64,000 nt of DNA from Amphiscolops sp. MND2022 (taxonomy: Eukaryota): assembly GCA_964187785.1 (NCBI GenBank), contig OZ076415.1, forward strand, positions 33,480,001 to 33,544,000. The letters are read 5' to 3'. How positions within the stretch are numbered: the first letter of the stretch is position 1; each line of letters starts with the position of its first letter. Below, piece after piece: positions 17,340-64,000 of this stretch. Made by a program: the position numbers and the translations under genes. Below the pieces are notes generated by a model. That model was not told where the DNA came from. It did not search any database and saw only the letters and a program-made list of their open reading frames with translations.

Positions 17340-17352
17340 TCTACCAAAGGAA

Positions 17353-19087: not shown

Positions 19088-19091
19088 ATAT

Positions 19092-20249: not shown

Positions 20250-20299
20250 TTGTCGTGTATTTTTTGTCCATTAGTTATTAATATTTTTCTTCTATTAGT

Positions 20300-22766: not shown

Positions 22767-22846
22767 CACTGCAAAAAATACACGTATACGGAACCAAACA
22801 TGGATACAATACACACTCATGGTTCAGGCGACTCAACGGAACCTAC

Positions 22847-25800: not shown

Positions 25801-26425
25801 GATGATTCCAACTGCTACAACACCAGCAAGAGAAGACCAGTTCACATGAATATAGAAGCTGAACTGCAAATCCACCAAAAAGAAACTTACCTTATTCTCG
25901 AATCAGGTATAAACTACAATAAAACACCAATTGAACAGACTGTATCCGTAAGAAAGTCAAACAGTTTACCATTTGCGAGACAGATCGAAAAACTAGAGAG
26001 TGTCTCGTACTTTACAAAAAATGATAAGAAGAAAACAAAAATCTACGGGTGATTTATTACAGGAAAACCAGAACAGACCACAGAAGGACAGTGAGGAGAA
26101 AGAAAATCGTCATATGCGGACAATCTCCAGCAAATACAGAGTCAACCGTGAACTACGGAACTCTCACTATCATACACCTTACATCGTCCATTATGCGAGG
26201 AGGAGGGGATCGTGACATGCGAAAGTTACGCTACCACAAAGAACAGCAATTATGGAGTTGTTAGCTGAGAAACTCAGAATGATTCTAATTAGACTGCTCT
26301 GTTTATGTTCAGGTATTGTACTATGTTCGTCATTATCTGACCCATTATAGATACAAAGTTAAAAGAATACAGTTAAAGATTCGTGATACATCAATTGTTT
26401 TTACGTAGATCTAGCAATCTTAACA
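22847..26425 (+). mobile_element. Old, internally deleted Mag-like gypsy element
   Basis: Diverged LTRs at 22847-23049 and 26211-26425; PBS TGGCGCAATC at 23050; PPT GAGGAGGAGGGGA; TSD CCTAC/CTTAC; knuckle CNNCQTIGHFARVC; RT fragment SPVVITVKKD. Confidence 0.8.
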
Positions 26426-27177
26426 CTTACTTTGCTGAATTACGCAGAAGTATCTCACTGTCCCGGATAACAAGACGACACTGGCATGTTACTCCCCATT
26501 GGTTATCGCCAATAAGAAGGTGGTGGGAATGATGCAATAGAGCTGAAATAAATGCAATCAATGAGCCTCATGCTACACCATTACCTGCCATTTTGTTGGT
26601 TTTTCATACATGTTTGGAATACTCAATGTAAACGTTAGTTGGACGAAAACATGTATCATGTTACATTCTTTCATCGTGAGAGATGAAACCAGAAACCTTG
26701 GTATTTTCCGCCCACATATAATGGGGAAGGAAGATCATAATCTGTTTTGCGTTTTTCTCCCAAATTTTCCCAAATCTCCACTTTGTTACTCCATTTAGTA
26801 AATTCTAGTCACCATGGCGCAGTAGGTTCGAACCCGTGCTGATGCGTTACATTTTTAGCGGAAAGTATCCCGGTGATTAGCGGGCGTCTTGTTAACTGTG
26901 GAATGTTTTTTCACCTCGGCTAATAATCATCGTGCACGGGTTTTTCAATTTGGAACCTGAATTTGGAAACGAAATGAATCTCTTCGTTTCATAAGCGGTG
27001 AGAACCACGAAGATTGTGGCCATAAACTTTTGTCTTATTTTCCGTTCAAGACTTATAGCCATTCTTCAAGTTGATGAAAGTGTTTCAAGGCAATTTTTGA
27101 TCTGCACTTTGAAATGAATCGCTTTTTGACTAAACTTTCCTTCCACCCATGTTTTATACGAAAACAATCGACGAATA

Positions 27178-29315
27178 ACAATACTTCGCCTTCTTTGTTT
27201 TAGTTTACTATCTCCGCAATATTTTCCACTAAGTTCTCCAAATTGGGCATTCGGTGTTTACTTTTCAGAATGGCATTATTCAGCGATCTGGCATCTAGCG
27301 CAATCTTGACACTTCTGTCTTTTTTGAACGTGATTACCACTGGTTGGATGATCATTTCGTCAGATATTTTGTCGACTCTTCTGATGTGTCCTGCTTCTAG
27401 TAGACTCTAGATTTCTGCGTCCACTGCCTTCTGGAGTTGAAGCAGTACTCGGCGTCCCTTTTGTTGAGTTATCTTCGCCCCTTCTTTAAATTCAATTTTT
27501 ATGTTATGACCTGAAATTTTTCCTTGCCTTTCGAAGAGTTTTGGAAATTTGTTTTTCATTTGTTTTAGTTCTGGTGATAATTCAACGTGATTTACATGAT
27601 TTAAAATGTTGTTTTACTCACTTTCTGGTTTTGCTTCTGCTACATGAAAGTTTAGTTGTGTTAGCCAGTGGCGACCAATCAAAGACCTTTTCCCGTCTCT
27701 TGCAATTACCAGCCTTGCTTTCTTGAAGTTTCGTTTCCCCACCTGCACGTCAACTGTAAAGAAACCAAGTAAGTTTAACGGTTTTCCGTTATAATCTACA
27801 AATTGTTCATTTTTCGATAGGGGCCTGGTAAAAACCAAATCTGACTTTAATATGTTGCGTAAGTCTTCTTTTGTAAAGATCTTAGTTGGTGATCCCGAAT
27901 CGATCATAGTTGAAAATGGCTGTTTGTTTATTTTGCCTTTCAACATGATAGGCGGCGTGCCACATTTGTGCGTGGGTTTCTTCTGCGGCCATCTATCGCG
28001 TACACTGTTTCTTTTTAGTCGGCGCTTTTCTAGGGAAAAGTGCCCGACTCCTACAGTGGCTAGTTTTTTTTTTCGTCAGACTACAATCTCACTCTGATTG
28101 GGCTACTTTTCTTACAATCGAAACTACTAAAACTTCTAGCATAAGAGGCCAAGTCCGGTCAGCGGAAATTAGTGCAAAAGGGTCCCCCCTTTCATTTTTT
28201 ACCTTTTTTACGTAACCTACAAAACCGGAAGAGACCAAAGGGTCCCCCCTTTCAATTTTTTTCGGCACTGTGCAAAATTTTTTCGAAAATTTTTTAAGGT
28301 CTCAAAAGAGTCCCCCCTTTGAGTTTTTTGATATTTTGCAACAAAATGTATGTTAATAAATCCCAAAGGGTCCCCCCTTTTCATTTTTCGGCACTATGCG
28401 ACATTTTCGAAGTTTTTTCAAAAAAAAAATTTCCAAAAAATTTTCAAATTTTATTTTGTTCCCAGTCGGGAAACAGTGATTTTCCAGTCATATAGAGCAT
28501 GAAAGGCACACTTTGGGTGTCTCCAAAGTGTTTTCAAAGCTTTTCATGAATACGTCCTGAGCATATTTAGAAAACTTTGCGCTTCTTGAGCCTTAGATAT
28601 AGCGCCGACTTTAGACGTTCCCGTCTTGTTTTTTTGTACTGCCACCCGTGTAGTTTTGTTGTTGTGCAATTCCTTCTCCAAAGGTAATAGCGAATCGTAA
28701 CGCTTCCTGCGGTTGATTTTTCGGATCAGTGCACAAGCGTTCTTGCACTGTTTTATTGTGCATGTTTTGAATGAATGCGTCCATGATCAATCCTTCCGTC
28801 TGTTGATCAAATTCACAACGTGCTGCTAGGCCTGTCAGTGCGTTCCAGAACTGTCGAAGTGACTCATTAGGTTGATGCTTTCGTGAAAAGAACTTGAAAC
28901 GGTCTAATGTTCTGTTTCTTGGTCTTTGGAACGTTTCCTCGCAGTTTGTTTTAATTTCATTTAGTGACGCTGTTGCAACTGTCATATTCGGATATTTGTC
29001 CGTTAGATTCTTTCGTGCAGCTGTTACCAGAGACAAGAACAAAATGCTTACTATTTTGCGTTCTGCGCGGCCTGTTCGTTGATGTTGTTCAGTAAAGCCG
29101 CCTGCCGTGGTTGGTTTTGTGTGGGTCTTCGCAGTAATTCGTGAACGGAGATAGAATGTTTGGCATTAACTGCTACTATGAAGATGTCCCACAGTTTTTT
29201 CTATTCTGTTTTAGGTGGAGTCTCGTGATGATCCCAGAATGATGGCAGTCCCGCCAGAGCTGACGGACTCCTTGATGATGTGCTTTCGTTCGCGTCATGA
29301 TGTCTCGCAGCGCCA
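27178..29315 (-). pseudogene. Truncated second internal region of the Mag-like element (gag, PR, start of RT)
   Basis: Near-copy of 32805-34579, with its own PBS next to 29316, a deletion of the zinc knuckles, and an insertion at 28017-28630. Confidence 0.85.
28017..28630 (-). mobile_element. DINE-1/HINE-like non-autonomous Helentron element
   Basis: Inserted in a T run. One end reads AACAAGACGGGAACGTCTAAAGTCGGCGCT. The other is a hairpin AGTCGGCGCTTTTC-TAGG-GAAAAGTGCCCGACT that carries the complementary sub-TIR. Internal GGGTCCCCCCTTT repeats. Confidence 0.6.
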
Positions 29316-29512
29316 TGTAATAGCTATCTGTAGCTGAGATAATTACAGAACACTGGTGAACAAGCAATACTGCATTCTCGTTAGACCTTGTGGCAACTGG
29401 ACGTATTTTTATTCAAGTTTTACATGGTTTTTGTATGTAAGCAACTTGTTCAATTAATTATTTTAGACTGCTCTTTTTTTTATTGAGTTCAGCTCGAGAT
29501 TGCTCTCTCACA
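29316..29512 (-). repeat. Shared LTR (3' LTR of the right copy, 5' LTR of the left copy)
   Basis: On the minus strand it is preceded by a PPT and followed by a PBS and gag. Confidence 0.85.
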
Positions 29513-29730
29513 AGCCCCTTTTTAAAGGTAAGTTATACCGATAATAAATGTACGTAATACTGCTGATTTAACAAACAAATATGTATGTATTGGTGAGCAA
29601 CAATTGCCAGAAATGGATAATTTTGTATACAGTAAACACCGTGGAGTTTTTAAAGTTTTTGAAGTTATGATTTCTGGAAGGCTGTTTTAGTTTTCTTCAA
29701 TTGGCTGTGGTTCGTCTAGTTTTGTAATCA

Positions 29731-31230
29731 TCACATTTGTCCGAAGAAGTCTGTCTTCATTCGGTGGCTCTCTCCTCTTCGTATTTCCTTTTGTGAAGTT
29801 TGTATTGTGTCACGTCGCGGGGGCATGTCATTTTCTTGTTTGATTTTTGTGGTTTGGGCATCGTCCCGTACCATCTCCTCCTCCTCTTCGGAATCTGACA
29901 GGTTAATTGTGGATGGTGTTTCCAGAATTGGCGATAGTTTTGGTTTTATGTTCCGTTTTTGTTGTCTTCGTGCTTTTTCGTTTAGTTGTTCAATTACTGT
30001 CTTCTTCTTCTTGATTTTTGTTTTTTGTTGCGTTTCATTTGTTTTCACTATGTCTCTTTCGGTTTCTTGTTCTATTTCGTTATTCTCAATTGTTGTCTGT
30101 GGCGGTTCTGGTATGTCGTTAAAAAATGGCAGTTCTGCTGTTTTTAGTATTTCCAATAGATCTGCCATTTCGCGTTGAGTTTCCAACAATCGGCGATCGG
30201 CTTCTTTTGAGCTACATGGTTGGTCATTTTGATTTGCCAAATCTCTTTTGGAGATTACTGTCTTTTGATTGGAGACTGCGGTTAAAAAAGTGATTGTGTG
30301 CTCCGATTGGTCCATGAGTTTGCCTTTCCTCTTTTTGTATACACTTTCCAATTTGCTGCCCTTGACACGTTCTCGCACTAAACTTCTCGAGTCTTGAACT
30401 GACTCGAAGTCCGACGTTGACAGTTTAACTTCTACTGGGTCTGAAATAGTTGTTGAACGATTGATCAGTAGTTTTTTAATTGTATTTGGTTTATTTCCCA
30501 CATAACGTTCGTATGGTGATTTCATTGATTTGGACGGATACATGCGTAGTGCAAACAGAATTTCAGAGAGGCCTGTGTGATCTTTTGTTCGAACATGTTG
30601 TTTGTTAGTTCTCAACCTTTCGTTGATGGTTCGAATTAATCTTTCGATTATTTCAGTTTCCGCGGGATCTTTATTGGGGCATTCAATATGTCTGATTTGT
30701 CTATTTGCGCAAAAGGCTTTGAAGCGTTTACTACGAAAAATAGTTGCTGGATCAGTACGAATGTTTTGGGGAATTCCGTGTCTAGCTATATAATTTTTGA
30801 GAATTTCTATTACTTTTTCTGTAGTCGGTTTTCTTAGAAATTTTGCTTCTGACCACCCTGTTAAGTGGTCAACGGAAACTAAAAGGTATTGTTTTGCTTT
30901 TGGGGCGTTTTGAAATGGTCCTGCGAAATCAATCGCTATTTCTTGGATTGATTTCCGATGGTTTTGGTAGTTTTCCAAATTGTTTTTGTGTTAGAATAGG
31001 TTTAAGGCTCCTACCTGAGTATTGGCACTGGTGGCAAGTTTTAGCTAACGAGATAACCTCGCGGAGCAGTCGCGGCCACCAGATGTTTGAAACTGTGGCT
31101 AACATCGTGTCGCGGCTTGGGTGGCCGTAGTGTAACGAGCGAATATTGATTGGGCGTAATGCCTTTGGTATTACGAGTCTTTCGTCCATGGACATGAATT
31201 TGTTTTGATCCAGGCTTAGACATCTAAAAT
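29731..31230 (-). pseudogene. Integrase of the Mag-like element
   Basis: LHYGHP..WWP..C..C zinc finger; IDFAGP, VDHLTGW, TDPATIF, IERLIRT. Confidence 0.88.
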
Positions 31231-40300: not shown

Positions 40301-41340
40301 CGTATATAATATATTGGTTGACTATCTTTCAACCAGATCACAGTATGTATTTGTGAATGGGAATCGGAGTGATGTTGCTGAAATTGTTACGGGAGTTCCC
40401 CAAGGTCAGTTCTCGGTCCCTTGTTGTTCCTGGTATATATCAATGACTTTCCACAGACCTTTCAGTATGATAATAAAATTGCACTTTTCGCAGATGACAA
40501 ATTCATCATTAAAACTTCAAAAGGGAGTTGTAACATGCAAAATGACTTAGATAAAATTTGTGATTGGTTTAATTACAAATAACAAATTGTCTATCAACAC
40601 CACAAAATGTGAGACTATGTCTTTTGGTAGCAACTACCAAAATTCGCTAACTGTTCATAATGAAGTTATTTCACGAAACTCATGTTGTAAGTATTTGGGT
40701 GTGTATAAAGACTCTAATTTAACATTCAGAGACCATATTAATCACGTAGTAAAAAAACTCAATAAATTTTGCGGCCTGATCTATAGAGTTGGGGATATTT
40801 ATCCAATAAATGGTTTAATGTCGTTTTACAATGCGTATGCTAGGAGTGTAATTTGCTATGGCCTATTGATTTATGGGTGCGCAGCGAGAACAAACCTTGA
40901 AAAAATTGAAATGGCACAAAGGCGAATTATTAGAGCTATTCTATTCAAAAAAAGTATGACAGTTTACAAGATATTCTGCGGCAAACCAAGCCCAATACAG
41001 TTTTTGAATTGAATGTTTTGGATGTTTTCCGAGAAATCTTTAATCGACTGAGAACTAATGGAACAACGAAATTTTCAGAACTGGTTGCTGAAAAAAACAT
41101 CAAAAAACGAGAAGATCAAAAAAAGGTATCTTGCCAATACCCTATAGCCGAACAAAAAGTAAACCAAAATCGGTTGAACATACACTAATCAGAAGATATA
41201 ATTGGTTGCTGAAATTGAACTTAATACCTGTTGGTATCGAAACCATGTCACAGGCGCAAATCAAAACTTACCTGAAAGACATAAATAGGCTTTATATAAC
41301 AGATAGTAGTGACCTTTTTGCATTATTCTTCCAATGAAAA
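37400..41340 (+). mobile_element. Near full-length degenerate CR1/L2-group LINE
   Basis: Coiled-coil/RRM-type ORF1 (HQLGP..AVIVKF). ORF2 has APE motifs (LTETWL, GGVAFYV, CGDFNID, CLDHV, SDHY) and RT motifs (GVPQG, FADD), with many frameshifts. Confidence 0.9.
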
Positions 41341-42330
41341 AGTTGGTCGCTGTTCTTGAGACACTGCTGGATCTATAACATTAACTAATGAATTAACGAT
41401 GTTTCTTTTTCGCGTAAACTTAGTGGTGACTGTGAATAACAAATGAATCAGTTTGAGTTGGTCTGAATTTGGTTCTCTAATGTCCAGGGCAGAAACTCGA
41501 AGGGCTGATTATGCTCCTTGTCTGTCCTGCTTGGACGTTTTTGTTACTTTAATTTTTTTTGATAATTGTCATTTTGTAATATGCATACGTTCAAGAAACA
41601 TGAAACTTCAAACTTCAATTAGAGGTTACCCTTAAAACTGGGAAAGCGGTTTTGCTCAACCGAAAAATTCTCGAAAAAATTTTCGAAAAATGTCTCCGGT
41701 AAGTCGCATAGTGTCGAAAACAACAAGGAGTCCTCTTTGTTCGGAAAACGTTTGGTTTCTGGTAAAAATCCCGGCGGAGGACTTCGATAAAAACAAATTA
41801 CAAAAAACTCGCGTAGTATCGAAAAAAAACGCCGGTCTTAAAAAAACAAAGTTCGGATATAGCGCTATATTTTCGAACCTCAGCATCCTCCGTAGTGAAA
41901 CGCAACTTACTTCGGATAAAATGTCAAAAGCTCGGATATAGCGTGCTGGGCCACTGGGAGAACCTAAAATTAAAACGGAAAATGGTCATTTTGAAAATTC
42001 TTACAATGCCAAAAATGTAAAGGGGCTTTTTTAACATCCAATTTGGTGCAAAATATCGAAACTTTCAGGGGACCTTCGGAGGCATCTGAAAAGTTTTGAA
42101 AAAAGTCTTTCGGATTTGTTGTGAAGAGCAAGCAGCTGGGTTCCATTTTTCTGAAGCAGAGTAGAGTTTGCAATTTTTAGTAAATTACCTGCATGCCGGG
42201 AGTGTAATTATCGTCCTCGACTTCAAGTCGAGCTCGACGATTATTGTAGTGAGTAGTTTTTCTCAAATGTTTCAGTTCTCAGTCGACAAAATACTTACGC
42301 CGATTCATTTTAATTACCTGATGTCTTTTT

Positions 42331-43575: not shown

Positions 43576-43996
43576 CGTGGTTTTTTTAACCTGCATATCA
43601 TTGCAGCTTTTTGAAAAAAAATTGTTTCTACCGGTCGACTGAGATAGTGGCTTGTATGAGTAGTTTGCTAGTTGTTTTTTGTTGTTACTGGTCTACTGCC
43701 ATAGTGGCTGGTATGGGTTTTCATTTTTCGTTTCAGACCACGTGGGTGTTTCTTCTCCCCCAAAATGGTGAAACACATGGCACTTGATGGATGACGAAGG
43801 TCCATGATATCTGATAGAAAAAAATATATGAATCAGATTCTAATGAGTTTTCAAAGGGATATAAATGATTTTCTTTCTTTTTTTAAAAAAAAGATCCATT
43901 TCAAAGTATCAATTACCTTTTGACATTCAAATCAATTTCGTAATTCAGCACGCGGAAACAAAATACAAGTTTTTCACACACATTTTCAATTCCCAG

Positions 43997-46900
43997 GTTG
44001 TATTCTTTGGTTTTTAAGTATCGTCCTATTGCAAACTTCCAGTCTTTACACCGTGTGTTGTCCAACAAATTGTTATACAAACAAATCGGAAATTTTGTAC
44101 AACAGACTGGTGAATGGTCTTGCTCTGATAACATAAAAATGAATATAATTGAATCAATTAAAAATGTCAATCGGTGTTATCGAATTTTGTTGTTTGATTT
44201 ATATCCGATTCAAATCATTGCTTTAAATCGAGTTGATTCAAATCAGACAAAACTGCTTTAAACTTTATAAAATGAAAAACGTTTATTAAAGTGTTTTCTA
44301 GTTTTTTTTCCGATACGGTGGAAGTGGTCGTAAAAATTCAACAAATTGTCAAATTGATTGAAAAGACCCTCGTTTTCAAATTTTGACATTTATACGGATT
44401 GAAAACCGAGAGTCGAGGTTTTTTTAACACTGTGTGACTTTCTAAAAAAAACTTTATCAGGCACAGTCGACTTCTTTTGGCAGTTAGATTGAATTTCTAA
44501 AAATGATTTCTTGACGCATCGCTGTTTGACCCTTAAGTGGGGTTCCCGACTTGTTGAATTGTATTGGATCTTAGTGTGTATATTTAAGGCGGTCGCTCTC
44601 CAGAAGTTGATGCTATGATTAACGAAAGGCAATCTTACACGGGCGACACAACCGAATGCTGTTTCTATATTCCAGATTTGAGGTCTTCAACCATTTTTGG
44701 CTTTAAGTGGGCTGATGGAAGAAGCACATCCACAAAAAACGTTACCGTGGCAAGTATTTTGAAACAATTGGGCCTGATTCATACAATCGTTGAGCCCCTA
44801 GCTACAGAATCGTCCGCTAAAATTACCATAATTTATTTCCTCTTTGTTGACTACCTTTGCCCAGAACTTGGACCTAAAAGTGATTCTATGATTCAACAAA
44901 TGGTAGCTGAAATCGAAGCTGAATGCCGTTCATTTGTCAACCTGGACGTAAACATTAGGGCTACAGCTTCGACAAATGCTACAGAATTTGTTGGAATTCA
45001 TTTGAAAATAACACTGGACTCCTTACAAAGCCAGCAACCTAACGAATTGGCTCGTTCTGTAATAACAAACTCTGTTCTTGAATATGACTTGGGCGTCACG
45101 AAAAATTCACTGCACTTCGAGGATACAAATTTAACACCAGTGAAAATTGACAAGCAAGGTATGGAAAGATTGACAGAAACTTATTTTGGGAATATCGGAA
45201 CGAAAATGATTTACATCCCTGATATGGATCGTATTGACTTCACCAAGTTATACGCAACTGGTGAAGTTCCAGGAGGAATTCCAGATCACGTCGTGAAACA
45301 ATTCGAAGGAGAATTGGTTTTGTTCAGACGGGAATTGACAAGGTGGCTCTCGGAGGACAAAAGTGGTCTTCTGTTGTACAGCTACAGTGCAAAGGAGCTC
45401 AAAAACATTGTGCATAGCCAAGTTCAGAATCAATTCGAGTTCGATTGGCTGCTGTTCCGGAAGTCTCAGATAGTTGCAATTGAAGTTACCGCATCTGGAA
45501 ACATCAGACAAGCAGTGCACGATAAATTAGAGCAAGTAATGACTAAAACAATACCAATGATGAAAATATTGATTTGGTTCTTCTTAGCAAATGATACGGA
45601 AAATTTTTCCTGGATTTTGGAAAAAAATGTCTTCGAAGAATTCATGAGAAAACATTTGAAAATCATAGTGTTCGTAGCATCAGCTAGCTCTGAAGACATC
45701 AAAACTGCAATGACTTCGGTTTTGAGTGAGAATTTCCAAGAAGAGAGCAACCTAAAGCTGAAATTTGAAAAATCCTCCATTAGTACATATTTTGTTGGTG
45801 GACAGGACTACGGACCAAATGAAAGACCGAAATTCTTACAGTTCTTACTCAACCAAGAAAGCAAAAATGTTGAAATAAAAGTATCCGATAAGTCTCCTTT
45901 GATAACCAACTCGCAAAAAACATCTTCAAGCAACGAGTTAGAAACTATCAAATTCTTAGCAGGTACTTTTACAGTGGGTTATCTCTGCCATGATTCCGAC
46001 AAAATTTGTCGATTGAAAAGTGATGCGCTGGATCCCGATGTTAGATTTCTAGAATCACAGAAGAAATTCGTTGACAAATTGGTCAGAAAGGCGACCAAAA
46101 AATTGGAAAAGTACGTGCATATATCTGAAAAACTGACAGTGATTCTAAGTCCGCAGCAGATGAAAATCCTGGAAGAGGATCCAAATTATTTACTTGTGAG
46201 AGGTGAGCCAGGTGCTGGAAAAACAGTTCTTTTGCTGGCCAAGGCTTTGGAATGCAGTCTGGACGAAAAAGTGAGATATATCTATTTCTGTTTGCCTCAT
46301 ACAAAACAGCATCTGAAAGTTTTCATAGAAAAATTCCGTGATTTTCATACCGATACACTAGGTGGGAAATTCCGCATTTTATCAGATGCTTCTTCAGATT
46401 TCATCGAACTGAGCAAAAAACCGTTCAAAGAACTGCATGACTCTGTACTACTAATTGATGAATTTTATTTTGACTGCAGTGAAAAAATGAGAATTACATC
46501 TTTTTTATTCCACCAAATAAGCGCTTCCATATTTCCTCATATGAAGAACGTTTGGATGACCAGCGTAGCCATAGCATTCTTTGAACCCTCGATGGATCTC
46601 ATGAAAGAATATCTTCCACTTGAGTTATTTTGCATCAAACCGCTGAACGTGAACTTTCGGAACTCCGTTCACATTGCAACTTTTTGTACCAATTACCATC
46701 ATAGAGGCGGGGTTAGAGCTTTTGCCAGCTCCTACGTGCCGGGAGTTTTCACGTCGTCTGAAATCGAGATACAACTTTCTACATTCAAAGACAAAATAGA
46801 CATCTCGTTTGAAAATCTCAGCTGCAAGTTCAGAAAAAGCAGATGGGTAATTATTTTCTGTGATGAACTTCATTTTGGTTCATGGCATACTTTTTTGGCC

Positions 46901-48700
46901 AATAGAGAAAGCGAATTCAGTGACTCTTTTGTCATTCAAACAAACGGGAGCCCAACAATGTGCGATTTCAGTGGCGCAGAAGTGCATTCAGTTGTGTTAA
47001 TCGTTGACCCTTTCTTCACGAAAAACCAAAAAGAGGTGGAGATTAGCGAAGCTATGTACAAATTGGCAGCATCCAGGGCACAATATGAGCTCGTATTGTT
47101 TGTTCACCAAGACATGAAGACAGTACTAAACGACTTCTCACAGAGCCGAAATTTCCAGCTCGACATTAATCCGGAGCAAGTCCGCATTTTAGCCACAGAT
47201 GACCCAGATGGGTCGAAATTTGTGGATACCCTGTACAACTTGGCCAGAGGGTATCTTTCGCGGGAAAGACTACAGTCCTTTATTGAAGCACGTTACCCTG
47301 GTTTGAATCCCAAGTTATTTCATGATTACGTTGCCGAGGAAAAGAATCGACGGGTTTTTATCCTGTTGTTGAAACACATGGGCCAAGGTATAATCAAATT
47401 TTTCCTGCAATGTTCTCGGGTTTTGACTAGTGGAGAGGAGATTTGTGGTATCAGATTCCAAGAAACAGATGAAGAATATTATCGGGACATCATCAAAGGT
47501 ATAAACGTTACTTTTTTCTTTTTAAAAACGTGCGTAAACAAAGCTAGTACAGATTGTTGCGTTATTTTTTGTTCAGAAGTTATAACTATAGCATTTAATC
47601 AAAAAACAACAGCGAGTCTTTTCCGGCTACTAAAAAGTGCGGTCTTAACTCGAGGCAGCTATAAAATATCAAAACGAGCCTAAATGCGGCTCTAATTAGA
47701 AGGAGTTGGTTAAATTCACATTGAAATAAAGAAATAGAGGTTGTCCCTTTAAAGTTGGATACAATTCCTCCACAGAAAAATTGTTCTGAGAATTGATTTA
47801 AAGAGGTTTTGAAAGTTACAGTTGCGGACTTACCCAAATTAACTACGATAACTACATTATATATTTCTCAAACATTGCTATCAGCAAAATGCTTCAATTG
47901 AACTGGATATTCCAGCTGGAGATTGACCAATTTAATCAGTCTTTTGCCAGGAATACAAAGTGAGATTCAGTGAAAATTGGCGCGGAAGACAAGTCATCAA
48001 TCTGGGCTAAAAAGGCGCGTAAATTCCTGGTGACTACGGCCTGACACTGAAAGTATCACGCAAGAAACTTAGATCTAAGATAAATCATTCAGCTCTTAAT
48101 TTTTAAACCTTTCTTATTCCACGTGTTAATCATGATTGAAATACGATACTGAGCTTTCTGTTTTTAGATATTGTCAATCACGCACTCCTGATGAACAGTA
48201 CCCCAACTTTCGACTGGATTTCCAGATTGATAGACCAAACGCAGATGCAACGAGCTCTTCAAGGGAACCCCACTCAGATTCTAAGTTACTCTTGTTTTAG
48301 ACCGGCACTGATGAAAAAGTGTTGGAATAAAATGAAGTCTTGGAATCTCCTAGAACCGGGATTGGAATCGAGGGCTAAACTATGGAACCAAGAATGTGGA
48401 ATTCTTACACTAATGTGCTATGCAAACTGTGCCATACAAGATGAGAACTGGATTCCGAAAACGTTCTGGGGCGACAAACTTCAGAACAAGAATGCTTTAC
48501 AATATGCCATTGAACACGGGAATATGAAGACAGTGAGAAAACTAGTAGGAACCAAAGAATCGGCCTGGATTTTTCTGAACCCTGAAACCTCGTATGATGG
48601 GAAAACTGCTGTTCAGTTTGCTCGCGATAATCAGTTTGACGATATTGCTGATATTTTGAGCAAAAAGAAAGTTAAACGGATCGCTGACGACAAAGAGTAA
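43997..48700 (+). CDS. NERD-like nuclease + SF1 helicase + ankyrin-repeat protein (Schlafen-like layout); 5' end unresolved
   Basis: Phase-compatible exons 43997-44109, 44676-47498 and 48168-48700. EFDWLL..IVAIEV; Q motif SPQQ; GEPGAGKT; LLIDE; LNVNFRNS; FSGAE; AASRA; ankyrin-like NALQYAIEHGN..V..L and GKTAVQFA..IADIL. Confidence 0.8.
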
Positions 48701-51059
48701 TTTGGACATTCAGCTACTTTCTGGAGAGGCTTGAAAACGTAGCAATTTGCAAAGAGAACCTTCATTGCTTATTTACAACCATATTCAATGAAATCGCGAT
48801 AGTTTGTAAAATTTTTCATTTTCTGATAGCTGTCAATTTTAGAATTTACAAAATTTTTCAATAAAAAAACTATGATTGATCAAATTGACTAGATTATCGA
48901 CAAAAACGAAAGAGAATTTACTATGAGCTAACTTGAAGCGTGGGACACAGACGAATCTTAGATTTTTTCCATTCATTTTTTTTCGAGAAGCAAACATTTA
49001 TTCGGTTCCAAAAAATATCGTTGTAATTCTGGTCAAAACCAGAACGAGTTGCGTCAAATTCAATTCTGTTCATTAGCTGTCTTGAGTATTTTAGTATCAC
49101 TGTGTATCAGTGAATTGCCTCGTACTCATACTGATTCATTTATTATCCGCAGTCACTAATTATTACACAGTAAAATTTCCATTATTTATAGTTTGGTTAA
49201 TGTGAAAGATCCAGCAGTATTTTAAGAACGGCCACCAACCTCTCTATCGGAAAAGATCTGTATCTAATACAAGCAATCATCGTATACGATACCGTGTACC
49301 GACTGTTTTCGAAGATGAATGAACTTTAAACAATCTTCTCCAAATTCATCGGTAAAAACTTGTTTCGACTCTCAGCAAATCTCAAATTACAAACAGAGAA
49401 CATCCTTTCTACTGATCCAGAACTAGCCGGAATTGGCACAGAACTAAATTTTGATCCCTTGACCCATTTGCTTTTCTCGCCAGAAGGCCGGATGTCGGTT
49501 TTTGGAACGTCAGCTTTTCCCTGGAACTTTTCATTTTTTATTCCTATCCCAGGTATTTTTGTGTCCGAGTAAATACCGAATAACTTTTATACCAATTTCG
49601 GAAGCCAACGAAATTACTTCATTGTCTCGGGTAAGCTGTACATTTTGAGGAAATTGTGTAAATATGTAGTTCGTGTAGACGTACAAGAAAATTCGTGTAT
49701 TCTGGTACTGTAAATGTACCGACGACAATTCACTGTTGTGTATCATTAGCAAATAACGAACAGAATGTCTGGTTCGAAATGTATTGGGGAGTTTGCTTTA
49801 CACATTTTTATACATGTGATATTTTGTCTTTATGGTATGTTCCCTGCGTAGTATTTTGTCATCTGACCTTTTCATCAGTAACCATTTTCAATGAACATTT
49901 CAGAGAATATTTTGGGTGAGTTTTTACGACAACGAATTCGCATCAAGAAAAGATTTTTCGTAAATCTCAAATGTTATCGTTGCAGCATAAATGCAACGAA
50001 TCAAATTCTCCTACATACAACTCGAAAGTTTGAATAGTTTAAAATATTTGTCGCAATTTCAATTCAAAGTGCCTTTGAAGATAGAATTTGTTCAATGGGG
50101 CTCAAAATATAAATAAATACACGATAGCAGTGTGTTGTTCGATACTGAAACGACCTGGTATCACGTACTTTGGTATCTTTCAATTTATTAACATGTATTC
50201 AATTTATTACCACTGCGTTTATGTATTTGCCTTGATTTATTGGTCTTTAAAAAATTCTCAAAAACGATTTAATTTCGCATTTTATAATCTGCATGCCAAA
50301 TCTATAGTTATTTTCCGACCCCACATTTTAAATGGGAGGAAAATCACTTAGCTTAGAGGGGGAATAATATCTAAAGTCAAAAAAGGGGTTAAGATCTAAA
50401 GGTAATAATATCTAAAACTTCAGGAAGGGAATAAGATCTAAAAGGAATAAGATCTAAAATCACTAAATTTTAGATCTTATTCTTTAGATCCTATTCCCCC
50501 CTCCCAAAATAGCTATGGCTCAGTTGGTGAAGGCGAAGAGGGCGGAAAATATCCCTTTGCTTAGCGGACGTCTTGTTCATTTTTGTCTGAAATGGGAGAA
50601 ACTTTGCCAAAAAAGTTTCTTGTCAATTTTTACTTGACTCAGAATTGTTATTGAACCAATGGTACGAAAAATAAGGGAAGTAACCTTTTGGAGTTTCTTT
50701 TCTGGCCATCTGATGATATTTAGGCCTATCATGTATTTCGTGTATCGCAGGAAACTTTCGATAATCATGTGTATTTTGAACGGAACTCCCAATTAGGATG
50801 AGGAATGAGCTCTTCGGGGCCCTGCCATTCAAAATGAATTGGCGATTAAAGGAAAATTGAACCATTTCACCAGCGTCGATGATAGTTTCAAAACAAACTC
50901 ACATTGAATAATTTTCCAATTCATTTTCTCATTATAGTAAAAGTGACATTTTCCAGGAAACCGGTTAGAATATCTATCAATACTATAAGGACACGTAAAA
51001 ACACTGCCAGATTAGGAGCACAAGTGTGATTTCATTTTAAAAACATTCAAACGGAGCGT

Positions 51060-55827: not shown

Positions 55828-57444
55828 TCATAATTCTTTCAAAATACTCATAACGCCATATAAAAATGGTGCCAAGACCAGATTGTCTATTTGTTGCGTG
55901 CTGTATTCTAGAAACATTGTGGCACTGACAGCCACTATATACCGATCCCATGATAAATCCAACACCAAACTTCCAGATGCTTGCAAAGCTACGGAAACGC
56001 CCAATATACTCAAAATAGCAACAAATGTGGCATCCAAGCTCTTCGGGTTGCCTTTTAGTTTCACTTTTCCAAATTTGGACCCATAAACTGATGCAATTGT
56101 ATCGCCTACCCCAATTGAAAGGATCCCTGCGTACAAAAGTACGTTGCGATCATTCACATTGTTGGGGTATATCCAAATGGGGACACACATGCTGACTAGA
56201 AGGTAAATTGGGGTTAGTAACAAATAACCACTGTCTTGTTTATCAGCAAAAACCGACAGTTTTTCAGATAATATTTTGCCAAAAGGAGGCAACTGAAAAG
56301 CGCGAATGAATTCAATTCCGACAAAAAGGAATAAACATAGAGATGAGGCGACCGACAGTACACGTCCGTTGATGGTTATACCTGAGTGAAATACTGCAAC
56401 TACAAATAAATGGTAGACCTTGCGCAATCTTGTTTTTGCGCGGGAATCTGTAGAAAGTTTTGAGCTCATTGAAGACACAATCACAGTGAAGCCAAATGCA
56501 GCTAACAACAAGACCGCCCAAAATATAAAGAGTTCAGTTGATTTTCGCATTTGACTGAGGAAACGGAATAACCATTGAATCGGCTCTTTTTCCAAAGAGT
56601 AGTAAAGAAATATATATGAGAGTGATAAAGCTATGAATAGTTGTAAATATAAACAAAATATAGAGAAATGCTTTGAAAAAGAATCATTTGGTCTGACTTG
56701 ACTTTGCCATTGGAAATGCACCATCCATGGTAAGAGAATAAACGTGAACAACACTGCGCTTAACCACCAACAGTCAAGATCAAGAATGCTTTCTTTTGCC
56801 AACGAAAAGGAAGCTATCTTTTCCATATTTAGAGTGAACATGAGACTTATCATTAGAGCTTCGCCTATAGAAAACGACTTGGCAACTCTGTAAAGCAGAA
56901 AAACGGATAAAACTAAGAAAAATGCAAGTCTACAGTAAAGAGATGAGTCGAATACATTCTGTCTTTGAAAAGGATGATGAAATGATATGTACGGCACAAG
57001 GTATTTTTCAAGCTTCAGGATAAAGTTGGAAGAAATAACACATAAAGCAATACCAATGGAAAATAGTTTCAAACGGGAACCGCTGAATCCAACACCCTTT
57101 AGAAGGGCTTCGGCTGGAAATACAAGAATCAGGAAAACATTAGACAGAAGAGCCGTCATAAAAAAAGCTTTCGCATAGGAATCAACCACGGGTAATAACA
57201 AAATAGCAGGGAGAATACATTGAAGGGTCAACCCATGGTCAACACATGACCTTCCGACCCCAAAGCTGCTTTTTTTGATGACCGTTAAGAAAAGGTAGTA
57301 ATTTAAGGGTGAGAACAATAAAACAAAGAACGAGAGAAGCAAAAGTTGACCCAATGATGTGTATAAGTAAAGGATGATCAAAGTAATGAAGAGTGTAGCA
57401 CCTTCCAAGAAATTTGTTGCAGAAACTTCCATTTTTGTTAGCAT
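55828..57444 (-). CDS. DOLK: Dolichol kinase, intronless CDS
   Basis: Multi-TM protein with RKVYHL, DKQDSG.LLLTPIYLL..C..P.W, GILSIGVGDT.AS..G...G and IDNLVL. Start placed at ATG 57444 (alternative 57432). Confidence 0.92.
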   Translation of the reverse strand: MLTKMEVSATNFLEGATLFITLIILYLYTSLGQLLLLSFFVLLFSPLNYYLFLTVIKKSSFGVGRSCVDHGLTLQCILPAILLLPVVDSYAKAFFMTALLSNVFLILVFPAEALLKGVGFSGSRLKLFSIGIALCVISSNFILKLEKYLVPYISFHHPFQRQNVFDSSLYCRLAFFLVLSVFLLYRVAKSFSIGEALMISLMFTLNMEKIASFSLAKESILDLDCWWLSAVLFTFILLPWMVHFQWQSQVRPNDSFSKHFSIFCLYLQLFIALSLSYIFLYYSLEKEPIQWLFRFLSQMRKSTELFIFWAVLLLAAFGFTVIVSSMSSKLSTDSRAKTRLRKVYHLFVVAVFHSGITINGRVLSVASSLCLFLFVGIEFIRAFQLPPFGKILSEKLSVFADKQDSGYLLLTPIYLLVSMCVPIWIYPNNVNDRNVLLYAGILSIGVGDTIASVYGSKFGKVKLKGNPKSLDATFVAILSILGVSVALQASGSLVLDLSWDRYIVAVSATMFLEYSTQQIDNLVLAPFLYGVMSILKEL

Positions 57445-59974
57445 ATCATTTAAGAGACTAGTCTGAAATATGAACAAAAATTCAAGTAAAATTGACTTTC
57501 CGCTTTTAATCCTTTGAATGCAGTTCAAACCCTCCAGCAACCAATCAATTTAAAAAAACCACTTGCTCGCTTTCTGTCATTAATGAACTTGGCCGTTCTG
57601 TCGGTATATTCAAATATTTACTTTTAGGAATGAAGACCTAACTTCAGCGTTCTCATAATCATCGGTCTCACGCAGAAATATGAAGTCGGGACGACTTGAA
57701 ACTTCATCTGAGAATTTTATGAATTTTGGCGAGTCACTTTTTAATCTCGCAATGAGTAAAAACAAAACATAGATTATCAATTATGCACGGCAGCGGAGCT
57801 ATTTGCAAAATATGATAGAAACAAAATTTCCCAGAATTTTTGTATAGTTTACATTTAATTTTTGAAGTCTTATCACCCGTGTGAAACAGTTTTTACATGT
57901 AATAATTGGAAATCTAGCTTCAGTCTAAATTAAGAGCAGAAGGTAGTCGTTTACTTTTTGATATTGATCAAGATGTCTATTGACAAATTACACTCGAAAA
58001 CTTTGAGCTCCTCATTGTGTACAAGTAAAAGATAATCACAAACCCGAGGTCTTAAATCTATACCCAATTTTTTTTACCGGAATTAATTTAGTGGAATTGT
58101 CCGTATTCTTTGGATGTAGTAAACACTAATGGCCAGTGGTCCTTAAAGTTTGACAGTGGTTAGCGGACAGCGATGAATCGGAAGATAATGACCCAAACGA
58201 AACTTTATAAACTACGTAAGAATCAAAAATTTAGATCGCACACAATCATTCCGCTATATTTGTCATGATAGTTTCCTATTATCAAATTATCAATCTCTTT
58301 TGATTTTATAGTCGTTTTATAGATACGAACAGAGAAAGTGTTTTGAAAAATTTGAGATTTCATTTTCTAGTAGGCGCTTTCGATAGACGCAGACTAAAAG
58401 TGGCTTTTTTAAAGACAAGCGATCTGACATTTCTATAAATTCTATAAATTGTAACTAACTTGCTTCCGCTTTTTGGCCAAGCAGCCACCGCGGGTGTAAA
58501 AGCGGCTTACTCTTGCGTGCGACTTTTCTTTAATTTTTAAATCGAAGACTAAATTTTTTCTCATATTTTCTACAAAACTGTTTTTGAGGTTATTTGTTAA
58601 GGAAAACCGTTTTCCAAGTCTTAAGGGTGACCACCTTGGTTCTATTTGGTCATGTGGGATTGATGAGTTTTCTCGAAAATTTTGCGACTTTCAAAAAATA
58701 GGTCCCTGTGGGGCACACAATTTCTGCTTTAGGCTACAAAAATAATTAATTTCCAAGTTCATTAATAAAAACATACAATGTTTTAAAAAGTTCACACTCC
58801 GGTCAATTCTTTATAAAACACATAATCAATCACGCGTATATGACGTTTCGCATTCGCATTTTAATACAGACAATGCTCTCGGCGTACGAATAATTAATAC
58901 TCATTCCATCAACTCGGCGTAAGAATAATTGACACTCATTTGCGTTATCTCAATGAACTCAGTGGACGAATGTATAATTACGAACAATCGCTCGCTTTAT
59001 CGCACGAGAATTGAACAAAATAACTATCGTCGCAAAGGTGAACAAAAATCTGAAAATAAACGTGGCATCTTTCAGATTTCAATATTATTCATCCTAATAA
59101 AAGTTAGTTAAACGGGTACCCGCTTCACTTTTCTGTAAATTTTCGTCAGGGATAGACAGTTTTGCGAACTTGAGGGGTCTTTGAGTTTTCCGGCATGTTT
59201 CCGAATATGTTTTCAAAATCTGGGCTTTTTGACGTTTCGATTTAGGGAAAAAGTGGCTTCCGAGTCTCATGGATATCCCTTCGCACCGTAAATTTGCTGA
59301 AAATGTTCACAATAATGCCCTTTTGCTTAGTTAAAATACAATACTATGTTTGAACCTTGAGTGAGGCGCCGAATTAGGCAGTTCCTGGTTGCTTTGTTTA
59401 TCACAGGACCAACAATTTTTAAACGTTTTTCTTCGGCTCAAAATCGGCTACTGTAGTGGAATAGTAATAGCGAGTGCTACGCTTTACCTTTTCACTGTCC
59501 TTTAGAATCGGCTGTTTTGTCCATTTTCAAAATTGTCCCGTTTAGGTCATTTTAAACCTATTCTACAAGCAGTGTTGTGCTACTCCTGCTACTTTGAAAG
59601 TTACAACTAAAAAATATTCCGATGAAAAAAGAAAGGATCTGTTTATAGGACGTTTTACGACAGGCCTCGAATTCTATGAAGGAATGAATATCCATTTACA
59701 AAAGAATTCTCACTTGTTATTGCCTGCTGGAGTAAAATTTTTTTCTAAAAATATAGATATTTAAATTCAATCCATTATTTTCAAATAGAGCTCTGAGGTT
59801 TTTATATAAGTATCTTTGTTTTATTATAGAAGTCAATCAATTTCAACACATTAGGATTTTTAGCACTATATTTTTAAAACAAAAGGTTACAAACACAAAT
59901 ACAAGGTTTTAAAAATCCAAAAACACAATCTCTCTAGAATGCATGGTTCGATCATCGGACGAATATTCAAGAGC

Positions 59975-62536
59975 CTAAGAAGCACCAACTTGTATTTTCT
60001 TCACAATTTTTCTTTTGTGGACAGCTATTGCGAACATGGGATACATTTGGTTGTGGTCAAATATTACAAATTGCGGTGGCATTGTTTTATCACCCACGCA
60101 CGAGTCGTACAAATCCTCGCTGTTTGGTTTGACAGGGGGTCTTTTGTCGTAAGGCTTCCCGAGACACGATTCACCACATAGTACAAGGGCAACCATTATT
60201 ACATCTAGTGAGTATTCGCGGTGAGTAGCATTAGCCCATTTGAAAGCGTAGTTGAACTCGGGTGTGAAGTAAGTGCCGTGGCCGAAGTAAGTTCCAAATT
60301 GGTCTCCGGCCAGTCTAAAATCAAAGTTACTTTCAGCTATTTTCCTAGCATTGTCCGGATGTGTACCGTGGAAGAGCAGAGCTTCGTTCAGTTTAGATTT
60401 GCCCAATCTTTTCAGCATGCTTTGACGCTTCACGCAATAATGTTTCCACAAGTTGTGGTTCTCAATTCTGCGAATTTCAATTTGAGGAGTCTGGGGCATC
60501 TTCGACAACACAAAGTTTGCTATAATGCGGTACTCATGGGAGGTTTCCGGGAAAATAGGCCAAGCACGGTAACCAGATTTTGTAACCCAGCTTTCAGGTA
60601 TTGAAACATATCGAGCTTTGGATAACTCTGATTTAATATCTTCAGTCGCTGCTGGCCGTCTACACAGTAATGCAATCTTCCCGGTCGACGATTTAATATT
60701 CATTGCACTGAAGTTGATTCTTTCATTTCCATTGGAGTTTGTCAACAAAAATTGACGATAAAGTTTCTCAATGTTCGCATTTTTGCTGATATATTGATTA
60801 CCTGGGTGAAAGTCGATCCACAAATCATCATTAAGACGGCTGAAAAGCTTAGAAGCAATTTCAGGAAACGCGGATACTTTTGACACACAAGATGCAGTTT
60901 CAGTGTTTTCTCTTCTTAGAAACCATTTCCATTCTTCAGAGTCATAACAGAGTCGTTCAACGCGGATTTCCGGATTTTCATACGCACAAACAGTTCCCTT
61001 CCTGGTGAAATGAAGAGGGTAGTCGCACTCATCGAAGTTGATGGAAGCTGAACATATATGAGGATCGGAGAACAATACTTCAAGGTTTCTTGCTACATCA
61101 ACAGGCAACAATGACCATTTTGGGTCCCCCAGTTTACACGCAACCCACATATATGGCCCTTTAAAGCCAAACATAGGGCATTCTTTTCTGACACATGGAA
61201 AAGTTGAATGAGTAGAGCATGTATCAGGCCACTCCTTCCGTAGCGAATTGTGCTTCTCAGAAAGTTCCAAGCGTTTTGGTCGTCTACACACACGAGTGAT
61301 TGAACCACTGGGACCTTCTTGAGAAAAGGGGAACTCATCATACATGGAACTTTTGCTGATGTTCAAAATAAAGCCTATCTTCGAGCCAACATCAAATTCA
61401 ATATTTTCCGAAGAGTCCGTTTGCATTTTGCTATAAACGGCTTCAATATCAGCGGATTTGATTGTACTTTTAACACCGGCAGTTAGCGTCCCGTAAGGTA
61501 CCCATTGAGGGGGCTTAGTATCTCGTAACCAATACCATACCCAATTTCTTTCGTCACCTTCGTTCAAACTGAGTCGATACAATTGGGCATCTCTGATTGG
61601 TCCCGAAATAGATTCGGCAACCACTTCATTTGCAAAGAGAATACGAACGTTAACTTTCACACCTTTTGAATCAAGAAGACTAAAGTTTAAGATCTCGTTG
61701 GTATACGGGTCATTGTAAGCAGATTCGAGACTAATTTCGGACTTCTCATCGAGACCCGACCATTCAAGTTCGTCGTCAAACCTGTAAACCCATTGATAGA
61801 TTTTCTTACTTCTAGGGTGATGGAATTTACACTTGGTTCCCAGTTCACAATTATTGTTTATGTAATTAACACAAATCTGCCAATGCATATTCTTTTCATA
61901 AACATTGGGATTTTTAATTATTTTCGGCGAAGCTGACCTTTGTCTCGGAGCGGGTACATCCAAAGCTCTTTCAACTTTATGGGGTGAAATGGTCCGCGTG
62001 GGGCCAGTCGGCAAAACCGAAAGTTTATTTTCAAAATTCTTTCGAGGTGACTTCGATCGGGAACTGCTCGCACGCATCACTCCATAAGCAGAACGTTCTT
62101 TACTATATTGAAAACTTCTCACAGTTTTTTCTTCCCACACAGAACCAGTAGTTCGGTTTCTCCTTTGCACTATTCTAAATATTCTCAAATCCATGTCTTG
62201 GCCACTTTGACTAACAACTGCTGAATTAAGACTTTCGGATAAACTTGACGTACAGAAACTGTCATCATAGAAAGATGAATCCATGCTCTCATCCAACACA
62301 GTATTTTGGTAAGTCAAGTGAAATTGTCGCAATAAATTCAACAATTTTGGAGTGTACTGAGTCAACCCATAACTCCTCAGGGACTCAAGGTCTTTCGGAG
62401 CTAGCGTATGGTTAAAATCACAACCTAATGCATCACAGATGCCTCGGAAAACAAGTCGTCTACATAAGTGAATCTTCGGGCATCTTTTATCATCACACAC
62501 TCTATTGTTGTATTCAATGCATATGGTAGGATACAT
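59975..62536 (-). CDS. PARP12/ZAP/TiPARP-family CCCH-WWE mono-ADP-ribosyltransferase
   Basis: Two N-terminal CCCH fingers, a third CCCH plus WWE pairs, and a PARP domain with LFHGT, FGHGTYF, LYDSCV, QFVIFD..QMYP. Start uncertain (ATG 62536 used). Confidence 0.88.
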   Translation of the reverse strand: MYPTICIEYNNRVCDDKRCPKIHLCRRLVFRGICDALGCDFNHTLAPKDLESLRSYGLTQYTPKLLNLLRQFHLTYQNTVLDESMDSSFYDDSFCTSSLSESLNSAVVSQSGQDMDLRIFRIVQRRNRTTGSVWEEKTVRSFQYSKERSAYGVMRASSSRSKSPRKNFENKLSVLPTGPTRTISPHKVERALDVPAPRQRSASPKIIKNPNVYEKNMHWQICVNYINNNCELGTKCKFHHPRSKKIYQWVYRFDDELEWSGLDEKSEISLESAYNDPYTNEILNFSLLDSKGVKVNVRILFANEVVAESISGPIRDAQLYRLSLNEGDERNWVWYWLRDTKPPQWVPYGTLTAGVKSTIKSADIEAVYSKMQTDSSENIEFDVGSKIGFILNISKSSMYDEFPFSQEGPSGSITRVCRRPKRLELSEKHNSLRKEWPDTCSTHSTFPCVRKECPMFGFKGPYMWVACKLGDPKWSLLPVDVARNLEVLFSDPHICSASINFDECDYPLHFTRKGTVCAYENPEIRVERLCYDSEEWKWFLRRENTETASCVSKVSAFPEIASKLFSRLNDDLWIDFHPGNQYISKNANIEKLYRQFLLTNSNGNERINFSAMNIKSSTGKIALLCRRPAATEDIKSELSKARYVSIPESWVTKSGYRAWPIFPETSHEYRIIANFVLSKMPQTPQIEIRRIENHNLWKHYCVKRQSMLKRLGKSKLNEALLFHGTHPDNARKIAESNFDFRLAGDQFGTYFGHGTYFTPEFNYAFKWANATHREYSLDVIMVALVLCGESCLGKPYDKRPPVKPNSEDLYDSCVGDKTMPPQFVIFDHNQMYPMFAIAVHKRKIVKKIQVGAS

Positions 62537-64000
62537 GATAATGGTGGTGTTTTCGTAGGATTTTGCGATTCGAACAAAACAAAGGCTCAAACACAAATAG
62601 ACAACTGAAATACATAGCAACATCAACAAAAATTGAGCGTGGTTTCAAAACTAAACGTCCTCAACTACTTCGTTGTTACAAAGTTTTTAGTTACCCGTGG
62701 ATTCATCCATAGAGAACAACCTTTCACGAAATCTAGTGTGCCAAATAAACCCTTGAATCAATTTGAAATTTGCACCAACTCCAAACTCTCCGTATTATTC
62801 TCAACAAAACTAATCGACTGTCAGATTATGGACGTTCTTTCAGAACTTTGAGCCCATATTCAAAAATACCCGAGGTTAACAATGGATCAAACATGCGCAA
62901 AATGTTGAGAGAGGGCAGTGATTCAAGAACAGAATAAAAGCGCCTGCGATTATATTTGGAAAAATTGGCCAATTCGGGTCAGTATTCAGTAATATTTATG
63001 CAACTACAAATAATTTGCAAATAATGCCAATAAGTTCATCTAATATTTCCACATTTTTTGGGATGAAATTCTGAAAAATTGCAGGAGTACATCTTCCGAT
63101 TTCAAACAGAAAAAAAAGCTGATTCTTCTCAAAAAAAATTCAGTCGCCTCTTTCGATACGAAAAGCAGACCCTTAGTGACTTTTCAAGAAAACACGGACA
63201 GATTTATGAAATAAATTTTATAAGTTTCATTGTTACGCCACTTTACCCAGTGGATTCCCTCGTTTTAACTGCTTGAACGTTTTACATGTTTTTGAAGGTT
63301 GCCAGCAACTTTTACCATGATTTTCAAAAATTCTCAGATTTGATGCACCAAAATTTCCGTGTAATCAGCGTTTATCAACTGCTTGAAAGAATTGTTCAAC
63401 GATCGGCGGCAAATTTAGGCTTTGAAAATGTTCAGGTTTCGTTATGCATAAGTACTAGTTTTAAATGCAGTTGGGACCTTATCAATGTTTCCGCCATCTG
63501 AATGCAAATTAACTTTAGTCACCTAATGAACTGCCAACAAGCGTCACATTCAGCGTCCAATTTGGGAAGCGGCGATTACATCAGATGAGCAGTTTTGAAA
63601 ATGAAGTGCGAAAACAACGTCATTGTAGCCGGCAAGGAAGACGGAAGTATTTTCGATTTCAAATGTGGAAATTGCAGTTTGGCCTTTCAAAATTTCCACA
63701 AGAAGCTTACTGAAACTTCTAGGTCTTACTAAAATTCCCTGCATGCACCCTGCAGCATGCAAATAGTTCCAGTAGTCTCGAGTGGAGGTGATGACTAGGA
63801 AGCAAGGTACTTGGGTTCGAATCAGAGGCTGGACTAATTATACTCTACTTTGGAAGAGGTAAACGAGACCACAGGGTCTCTCCCTTCGCGTTTTTTTCCG
63901 GGACTGCGATTTTTTGAAAATTTTGATTTCACTAAAGGGTCAATATATATTTTTGATAATTTCGGCTCAGAAAAAGCGTTTTTCGAGTCACAATGGTGGC

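Follow-up and report, generated by a model that had tools for sequence, protein, structure and literature searches.

The stretch of DNA analysed here (64,000 nucleotides of Amphiscolops sp. MND2022, contig OZ076415.1, positions 33,480,001 to 33,544,000 of the forward strand; hereafter the window, from whose first letter all positions are counted) carries an intact two-exon animal gene. Its predicted product joins a NERD-like nuclease fold to a superfamily 1 (SF1) helicase of the UvrD/Schlafen group III type and to ankyrin repeats. We infer a role in defence that targets nucleic acids, and the reading as a whole is given a probability of about 0.6. The parts follow one another in the order variable N-terminal region, NERD-like domain, SF1 helicase, conserved stretch and C-terminal ankyrin repeats. 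The gene belongs to an expanded family, and the features on which the argument depends are the following.

44615-47498, + strand: exon 1, codons 1-961 and the first base of codon 962
47499-48167, + strand: phase-1 intron (GT...AG), with donor, acceptor and phase kept in the orthologue and in paralogues
48168-48700, + strand: exon 2, 176 codons and the stop codon (48698-48700), a degenerate ankyrin-repeat domain
44615-47683, + strand: open frame of 1022 codons, which reads through past the splice donor into the intron
44615-45091, + strand: N-terminal region, residues 1-159, the most variable part, no Pfam match
45092-46054, + strand: NERD-like/SWADL-like domain of PD-(D/E)xK fold, residues 160-480, from an AlphaFold model and structure comparison
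46127-47164, + strand: compact SF1 helicase (UvrD/Schlafen-group-III-like) of two RecA lobes, residues ~505-850
47165-47497, + strand: post-helicase tail, residues 851-961, up to the splice donor, no Pfam match
43997-44614, + strand: upstream non-coding stretch outside the coding sequence, in another frame, partly a high-copy repeat

The NERD-Like Domain Keeps Nuclease-Type Residues

Residues 160-480 were modelled by AlphaFold with good confidence (pLDDT 84, pTM 0.86) as a helix, three strands, a long helix and a strand, an order that fits the alpha-beta-beta-beta-alpha-beta core of restriction-endonuclease-like folds. The top 50 structural matches were mostly PD-(D/E)xK nucleases. SWADL domains were also prominent among them, and the very best matches were the SWADL/linker domains of human SLFN14, SLFN11, SLFN12 and SLFN5. 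Bacterial NERD clusters, some of them fused to a helicase, were closest in shape in the ESM Atlas (TM score 0.44-0.50, at most 220 residues aligned). By language-model features, the whole protein scored 0.96 to two clusters of unnamed, mostly molluscan proteins as well as to bacterial clusters with NERD plus an SF1 helicase; the ten best matches that carried any family assignment all shared NERD. Thus the nuclease-like fold that the first-pass annotation had proposed is borne out by the model and by its NERD, SWADL and PD-(D/E)xK matches.

The catalytic signature of NERD domains is GE ... D ... ExK. The 1022-residue frame contains NQFEFDWLLFRKSQIVAIEVTAS, and the motif EFD..IEVT, with threonine in place of the usual lysine, is present as first described. 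The putative active-site residues lie within one short interval.

45311-45526, + strand: putative active site, comprising E233 (45311-45313), D277 (45443-45445), E290-V-T292 (45482-45490) and K304 (45524-45526)

The model places E233 within helix 1 and D277 where strand 2 begins; strand 3 carries both E290 and T292, and the helix that follows bears K304. Conservation was counted over 37 family sequences of ~25% identity. G232 was found in all 37 and E233 in 36 on helix 1; F274 and D277 (37/37 each) and W278 (36/37) mark strand 2; and E290 was kept in 36 on strand 3. The position two residues after this glutamate was more diverse, including glycine (24), threonine (5, as here), serine (5), alanine (2) and lysine (1). 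K304, 14 residues past E290 and within a K-[LI]-x-Q motif, was present in all 37. This pattern looks like a relocated lysine and not like decay. The active site would therefore be altered but probably live, because E233, D277, E290 and K304 each vary in at most one of the 37 sequences. Of the earlier suggestion of a dead or altered nuclease, the second half is favoured, since the lysine at E+2 is missing, and the first half is not the best reading.

No Pfam match of any kind to the N-domain was found in the 37 family members, PF08378 gave no match on the full open reading frame (ORF) either, the family profile of the N-domain yielded only noise against PDB sequences, and searches of NCBIfam and PADLOC returned matches at the level of the P-loop only. 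Standard annotation would miss the nuclease-like domain because Pfam fails to detect it. For residues 1-159, the ESM feature score (0.83) was in the noise range and Pfam gave no match; this region was found in only some paralogues. It holds no Schlafen core, because it is too short for a core of ~340 residues.

A paralogue elsewhere in the genome (P0012, G000:C8:10194110-10196020) carries ~25 tandem KDPVDDFPKGKLNE-like units, inserted after the N-terminal region and ahead of the nuclease-like domain.

A Compact SF1 Helicase

The helicase motifs were located as follows.

46145-46159, + strand: Q motif, LSPQQ
46202-46225, + strand: Walker A, GEPGAGKT
46457-46462, + strand: Walker B, in LLIDEF
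46643-46675, + strand: motif IV, LNVNFRNSVHI
46967-46981, + strand: motif V, FSGAE
47069-47092, + strand: motif VI, ASRAQYEL

Across the family these take the nearly invariant forms LSPQQ, GEPGxGKT, DE, LNVxFRSxxHI, FSGxE and SRAQ[FY]EL. The set was at first called complete. Motifs Q, I, II, IV, V and VI were indeed identified, while motif III was not recognisable across the family, with only W647 invariant at its place. Pfam matches were confined to the P-loop, namely SLFN-g3_helicase (PF09848, 25.6 bits, gathering score 24), AAA_22 and NPHP3_N. Against PDB, the family profile matched Bacillus HelD (6wvk; E = 8.5e-5) in an alignment that takes in motifs II, IV, V and VI, and it matched SLFN5 at E = 0.0019. 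Residues 480-870 were modelled as a two-lobe SF1 helicase (AlphaFold, pLDDT 81, two RecA lobes), for which Foldseek ranked IGHMBP2 (6e-10) and SLFN11 (1e-9) at the top. The structural Z scores were highest for UvrD (21.8 and 21.1), followed by SLFN11 (20.2), SLFN14 (19.1) and HelD (18.5). Among the structural matches, the Schlafens had the highest sequence identity (15-18%). In the Atlas the nearest shapes were compact bacterial UvrD-like helicases (TM score 0.65-0.69), several of them NERD-fused or annotated as DUF2075.

Weak Pfam matches at Walker A to NPHP3_N, nSTAND and AAA_16 could be taken to mean that the protein is no helicase but a signalling NTPase of the STAND/NLR kind, with the ankyrins as its sensor. 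We rejected this reading, which is hardly credible given the fold and helicase motifs IV-VI.

Two Exons Joined at a Conserved Phase-1 Intron

The first-pass annotation had set the start of the feature at 43997. The true start is 618 nt downstream, at a conserved ATG at 44615, and the stretch before it is non-coding: its frame (43997-44614) differs from that of the main ORF, and an in-frame stop lies ahead of 44615. An orthologue from a second assembly (L013:5668-8667, ERZ26859043) begins at the same methionine (MINERQSYTGDTTECCFYIP vs. MVEARNTFLGETGDCCFYIR), with similarity from Met1 on, and 44615 is therefore the start. From there the predicted product has 1138 residues (961 + 1 + 176) and no evident signal peptide. 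An allele of the gene comes from assembly ERZ25074608.

The predicted splice joins 47498 to 48168. The donor is AAAG/GTATAA at 47498/47499, the acceptor ctgtttttag/AT at 48167/48168, and the phase-1 junction leads into the frame of an ORF (48191-48700) that had been listed separately. The read-through beyond the donor (47499-47683) is non-coding, and such tails in the ORFs of the family are mutually unrelated. The evidence for this junction comes from comparison with the orthologue and paralogues, and it is strong. In the orthologue, the donor (TTAAAG/GTAATA) and the acceptor (tattttcag/AC) match in position and phase, and protein similarity restarts right at the acceptor (D-IVNHALLMNS vs. D-IVEHALLMNS). 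In at least 6 of the 8 paralogue loci inspected, a consensus phase-1 donor closes the conserved tail and a phase-1 acceptor with a polypyrimidine tract stands directly before the conserved start of exon 2. Moreover, 17 paralogues of exon 2 occur in the genome, and at least 12 of them follow a helicase paralogue on the same strand. The phase-matched intron proposed from the sequence at the outset is thus well founded, with the same sites and phase in the orthologue and in at least six paralogues, and with nonsynonymous divergence (pN) far below synonymous divergence (pS). Sequencing runs were also searched. Four DNA runs, all from one sample, contain the locus, and no RNA run does; the contigs of the DNA runs are collinear with the genome and keep the intron, and are therefore uninformative on splicing.

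Exon 2 encodes an ankyrin-repeat domain. Two C-terminal repeats are clear (48476-48667), and the ~100 residues ahead of them resemble degenerate repeats. The score of this copy to Ank_2 (24.3 bits) is under the gathering score (27.3). Across the family, Ank_2 matches 5 of 9 exons (best E = 8.7e-10), and the exon-2 profile matches KANK and designed ankyrin proteins in PDB (E = 1.6e-5).

Within the intron, an AATAAA lies at 47725-47730, 45 nt past the read-through stop. A short isoform that ends near it and lacks the ankyrin repeats is conceivable; the count of poly(A) hexamers in the window was not above chance.

Both Exons Are under Purifying Selection

Protein identity to the orthologue was 58% over exon 1, with 38% in residues 1-159, and 64% over exon 2 from the acceptor on. 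At the nucleotide level, the exons were 68-70% and the intron 56% identical. The pN was 0.35 against a pS of 0.78 in the N-terminus, 0.25 against 0.78 in the rest of exon 1, and 0.21 against 0.73 in exon 2. Synonymous sites were saturated (pS 0.73-0.84), and the claim is therefore limited to pN being far below pS. Within the sequenced individual, exon 1 showed 5 synonymous and 4 nonsynonymous differences and one in-frame 3-nt indel (pN/pS ~0.21). The gene is under purifying selection in both exons. The post-helicase tail (residues 851-961) was conserved in the orthologue and a few paralogues.

An Expanded, Lineage-Restricted Family

At least 22 diverged family loci, 28-35% identical, were found in the genome (assembly of 1.07 Gb), ~9 of them with intact frames of ~1000 residues. 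Some are in tandem (e.g., C6:17.19-17.34 Mb), and no near-identical full-length copies were found. The second assembly (ERZ26859043) is also multi-copy, with some paralogues in tandem. When 1.84 billion representatives were scanned exhaustively with HMMER, 103 matches were obtained. All that were traced came from two eukaryote-host ENA assemblies (ERZ25074608 and ERZ26859043), the ten that were checked occurred in ENA assemblies only, with no names attached, and none of the 103 was identified as bacterial. In a word-indexed homologue search, neither the single sequence nor the family profile brought up anything beyond the allele and the orthologue. By these searches the family is lineage-restricted.

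DNA2 has a nuclease-plus-SF1-helicase layout, and Dna2 and Exo5 were among the fold matches, so a housekeeping nuclease-helicase of DNA repair or replication (DNA2, HelB or Exo5 type) has to be considered. It is very improbable here: the 103 matches among 1.84 billion representatives are few and those checked are unnamed in public sources, the copies are diverged and many, and the domain order and compact helicase are unlike DNA2. The paralogue count proposed in the first-pass annotation was carried out, and it excludes a single-copy housekeeping helicase.

Another explanation for the copy number is transposition, the gene being cargo or part of a mobile element. The gene is multi-copy, has one long exon and lies amid transposon remnants in a window that is retroelement-rich (37% G+C). 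It is also flanked by an inverted pair of a repeat of 130-146 nt (41320-41465 and 49124-49252; as a 130-nt pair, 41329-41458 and 49124-49252). However, this repeat is dispersed, with at least 40 genome copies of at most 95% identity, and has no relation to where the paralogues lie. Its placement on both sides of the gene appears to be chance, and the two arms would not be element termini. Moreover, the orthologue locus lacks such flanking repeats, the paralogues are old (28-35% identical), the depth of read contigs over the gene (25-96) is at the single-copy level, and the intron and ankyrin exon are conserved. Transposon cargo was therefore rejected on the dispersed nature of the repeat, and we hold a mobile element of any kind to be a very slim prospect. 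The 2.8-kb exon had also raised the idea of retroposition or horizontal origin. The phase-1 intron is kept in paralogues of only ~30% identity and no match was identified as bacterial, which argues against recent horizontal transfer or retroposition.

Two further observations concern DNA near the gene and elsewhere. Read-contig depth rises to ~10,000-30,000 at 43700-44060, which indicates a very high-copy dispersed repeat just upstream. A 43-residue fragment at G000:C11:26625201-26625329 (+) is 91% identical to residues 380-422 of the gene and resembles a partial copy of recent origin or a remnant of gene conversion.

A Nuclease or a Connector

Several findings weigh against a live nuclease-helicase with a role in defence. 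The canonical lysine of D...ExK is absent from 36 of the 37 family sequences, Pfam NERD (PF08378) matches 0 of the 37 aligned N-domains at E <= 0.1, and a profile-profile alignment to a genuine NERD family of this genome keeps the register yet is weak (E = 0.048). The helicase domains of human SLFN5 and SLFN14 show no ATP hydrolysis or no unwinding (PMC8789055; PMC12135189), and an intact motif set is therefore no proof of motor activity. The orthologue has an in-frame stop after codon 106, beyond which the same frame resumes; pseudogenisation, a polymorphism or an error of assembly could each account for it. Only DNA runs contain the locus, so that splicing and expression are predicted from sequence. 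Finally, no tie of the gene to infection was found, and its neighbours are mostly transposon remnants.

In the serious rival reading, which we judge unlikely, the nuclease-fold domain would be a connector without catalysis, as in SWADL, and the protein a binder or scaffold of nucleic acids, ATP-dependent or -independent, whose ankyrins recruit other effectors. The best structural matches are, after all, SWADL domains of SLFN14, SLFN11, SLFN12 and SLFN5, which have no reported catalytic role; PMC8789055 calls the Schlafen linker "of unknown function" and, elsewhere in its description, a "connector". The missing lysine and the inactivity of the Schlafen helicases tested to date point the same way. 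On the other hand, charged residues at the canonical PD-(D/E)xK positions, together with K304, are near-invariant over 37 sequences as diverged as these, which a pure scaffold can hardly explain. Nuclease-type acidic residues are retained in the domain here, whereas none are described for the SWADL domain of Schlafens.

If the protein is instead a nuclease-helicase, as we prefer, the SF1 motor would bind single-stranded nucleic acid and translocate on it, driven by ATP. The upstream nuclease-fold domain might then cut the bound nucleic acid through E233, D277 and E290, with K304, from the following helix, standing in for the canonical lysine. The ankyrin repeats could mediate protein contacts for target sensing, autoinhibition or the recruitment of partners.

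Relation to Known Nuclease-Helicases

Bacterial anti-phage defence has nuclease-helicase fusions of the NERD/DUF2075 type among its themes, and to our knowledge the Schlafens are their only well-studied animal relatives. We also know of no established origin or function for the Schlafen SWADL domain.

The closest architecture is that of bacterial NERD-helicase fusions (PF08378 with a UvrD-like, DUF2075/SLFN-g3 or Viral_helicase1 helicase), in which a PD-(D/E)xK fold is followed by a compact SF1 helicase in the same order. They are nearest to the present protein in predicted shape for each domain and in language-model features for the whole. In contrast to them, this animal gene bears an intron, lacks the ExK lysine and finds no match to them at the sequence level (Pfam NERD in 0/37; no bacterial match identified). 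It also has more parts, including the 160-residue N-terminal region, insertions of ~110 residues, a further C-terminal stretch and the ankyrin repeats. NERD-helicases are described as associated with defence islands, in which they are enriched (bioRxiv 10.64898/2026.09.30.754977).

Nhi of Staphylococcus, a PD-(D/E)xK domain with a DUF2075 helicase, has demonstrated anti-phage activity, and its authors pointed to a link between DUF2075 and Schlafen (bioRxiv 10.1101/776245). In Nhi, one polypeptide combines a PD-(D/E)xK nuclease at its N-terminus with an SF1 helicase, the layout seen here, and no other close layout has a demonstrated antiviral function. Nhi is bacterial and has no ankyrin repeats. 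The PADLOC match to Nhi was weak (E = 3.1e-5; residues 515-569 to profile positions 191-244 of 470). It spans only 54 residues at the Q motif and Walker A, and falls short of a full-length match. The layout and the dynamics of the gene family would fit defence against viruses or mobile elements, as in Nhi and the bacterial NERD-helicases.

The likeness to group III Schlafens (SLFN5, SLFN11, SLFN13 and SLFN14) is to their SWADL/linker and SF1 helicase module. The Schlafen core RNase (AlbA_2) is missing, with no Pfam match to it in the ORF, the SWAVDL motif of Schlafens is absent, and the SLFN-g3 match of Pfam covers the P-loop alone. Hence the Schlafen 11-type layout proposed earlier applies to the SWADL linker and helicase of group III and not to the N-terminal RNase core. 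Apart from the start coordinate, then, the original observation is confirmed, and its interpretation is partly supported: the domain layout stands, with evidence of its own for the nuclease-like fold, the SF1 helicase and the spliced ankyrin exon, a role as effector is plausible, and the suggested origin lacks support.

A second multi-copy NERD-helicase family, family B, occurs in the same genome (loci L014-L021, e.g., L015:790-2085:- and L017:532-2082:-). Its Pfam NERD scores (27-32 bits) are above the cut-off, and a genome-wide PF08378 search gave 10 loci, none of them of the family studied here. Family B has the same layout, with a NERD domain and, ~150 residues downstream, the Q motif and Walker A. 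The ORFs of the family stop soon past the P-loop, presumably at introns. It differs in its Pfam-detectable NERD domain and in having more introns, and its likeness to the present family is limited to Walker A and the weak GE/D/ExK alignment given above.

In the literature, no paper was found that joins SWADL to NERD or that treats animal NERD-helicase-ankyrin genes; most subscription journals lay outside this search. An expanded animal family that couples a NERD-like domain with nuclease-type residues to a Schlafen/UvrD-like motor and ankyrin repeats would be a new case of animals with an immune architecture of prokaryotic type. The family also offers a testable handle on the origin of the Schlafen SWADL-helicase module. 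That the family links the bacterial NERD-helicases to this module is a tentative idea, about which we are more doubtful than confident.

Neighbouring Open Reading Frames

Two further ORFs were observed on the opposite strand, in the region 7-11 kb downstream of the gene.

55828-57537, - strand: ORF of 569 codons without a Pfam match
59975-62626, - strand: ORF of 883 codons with a PARP catalytic domain (E = 1.8e-15)

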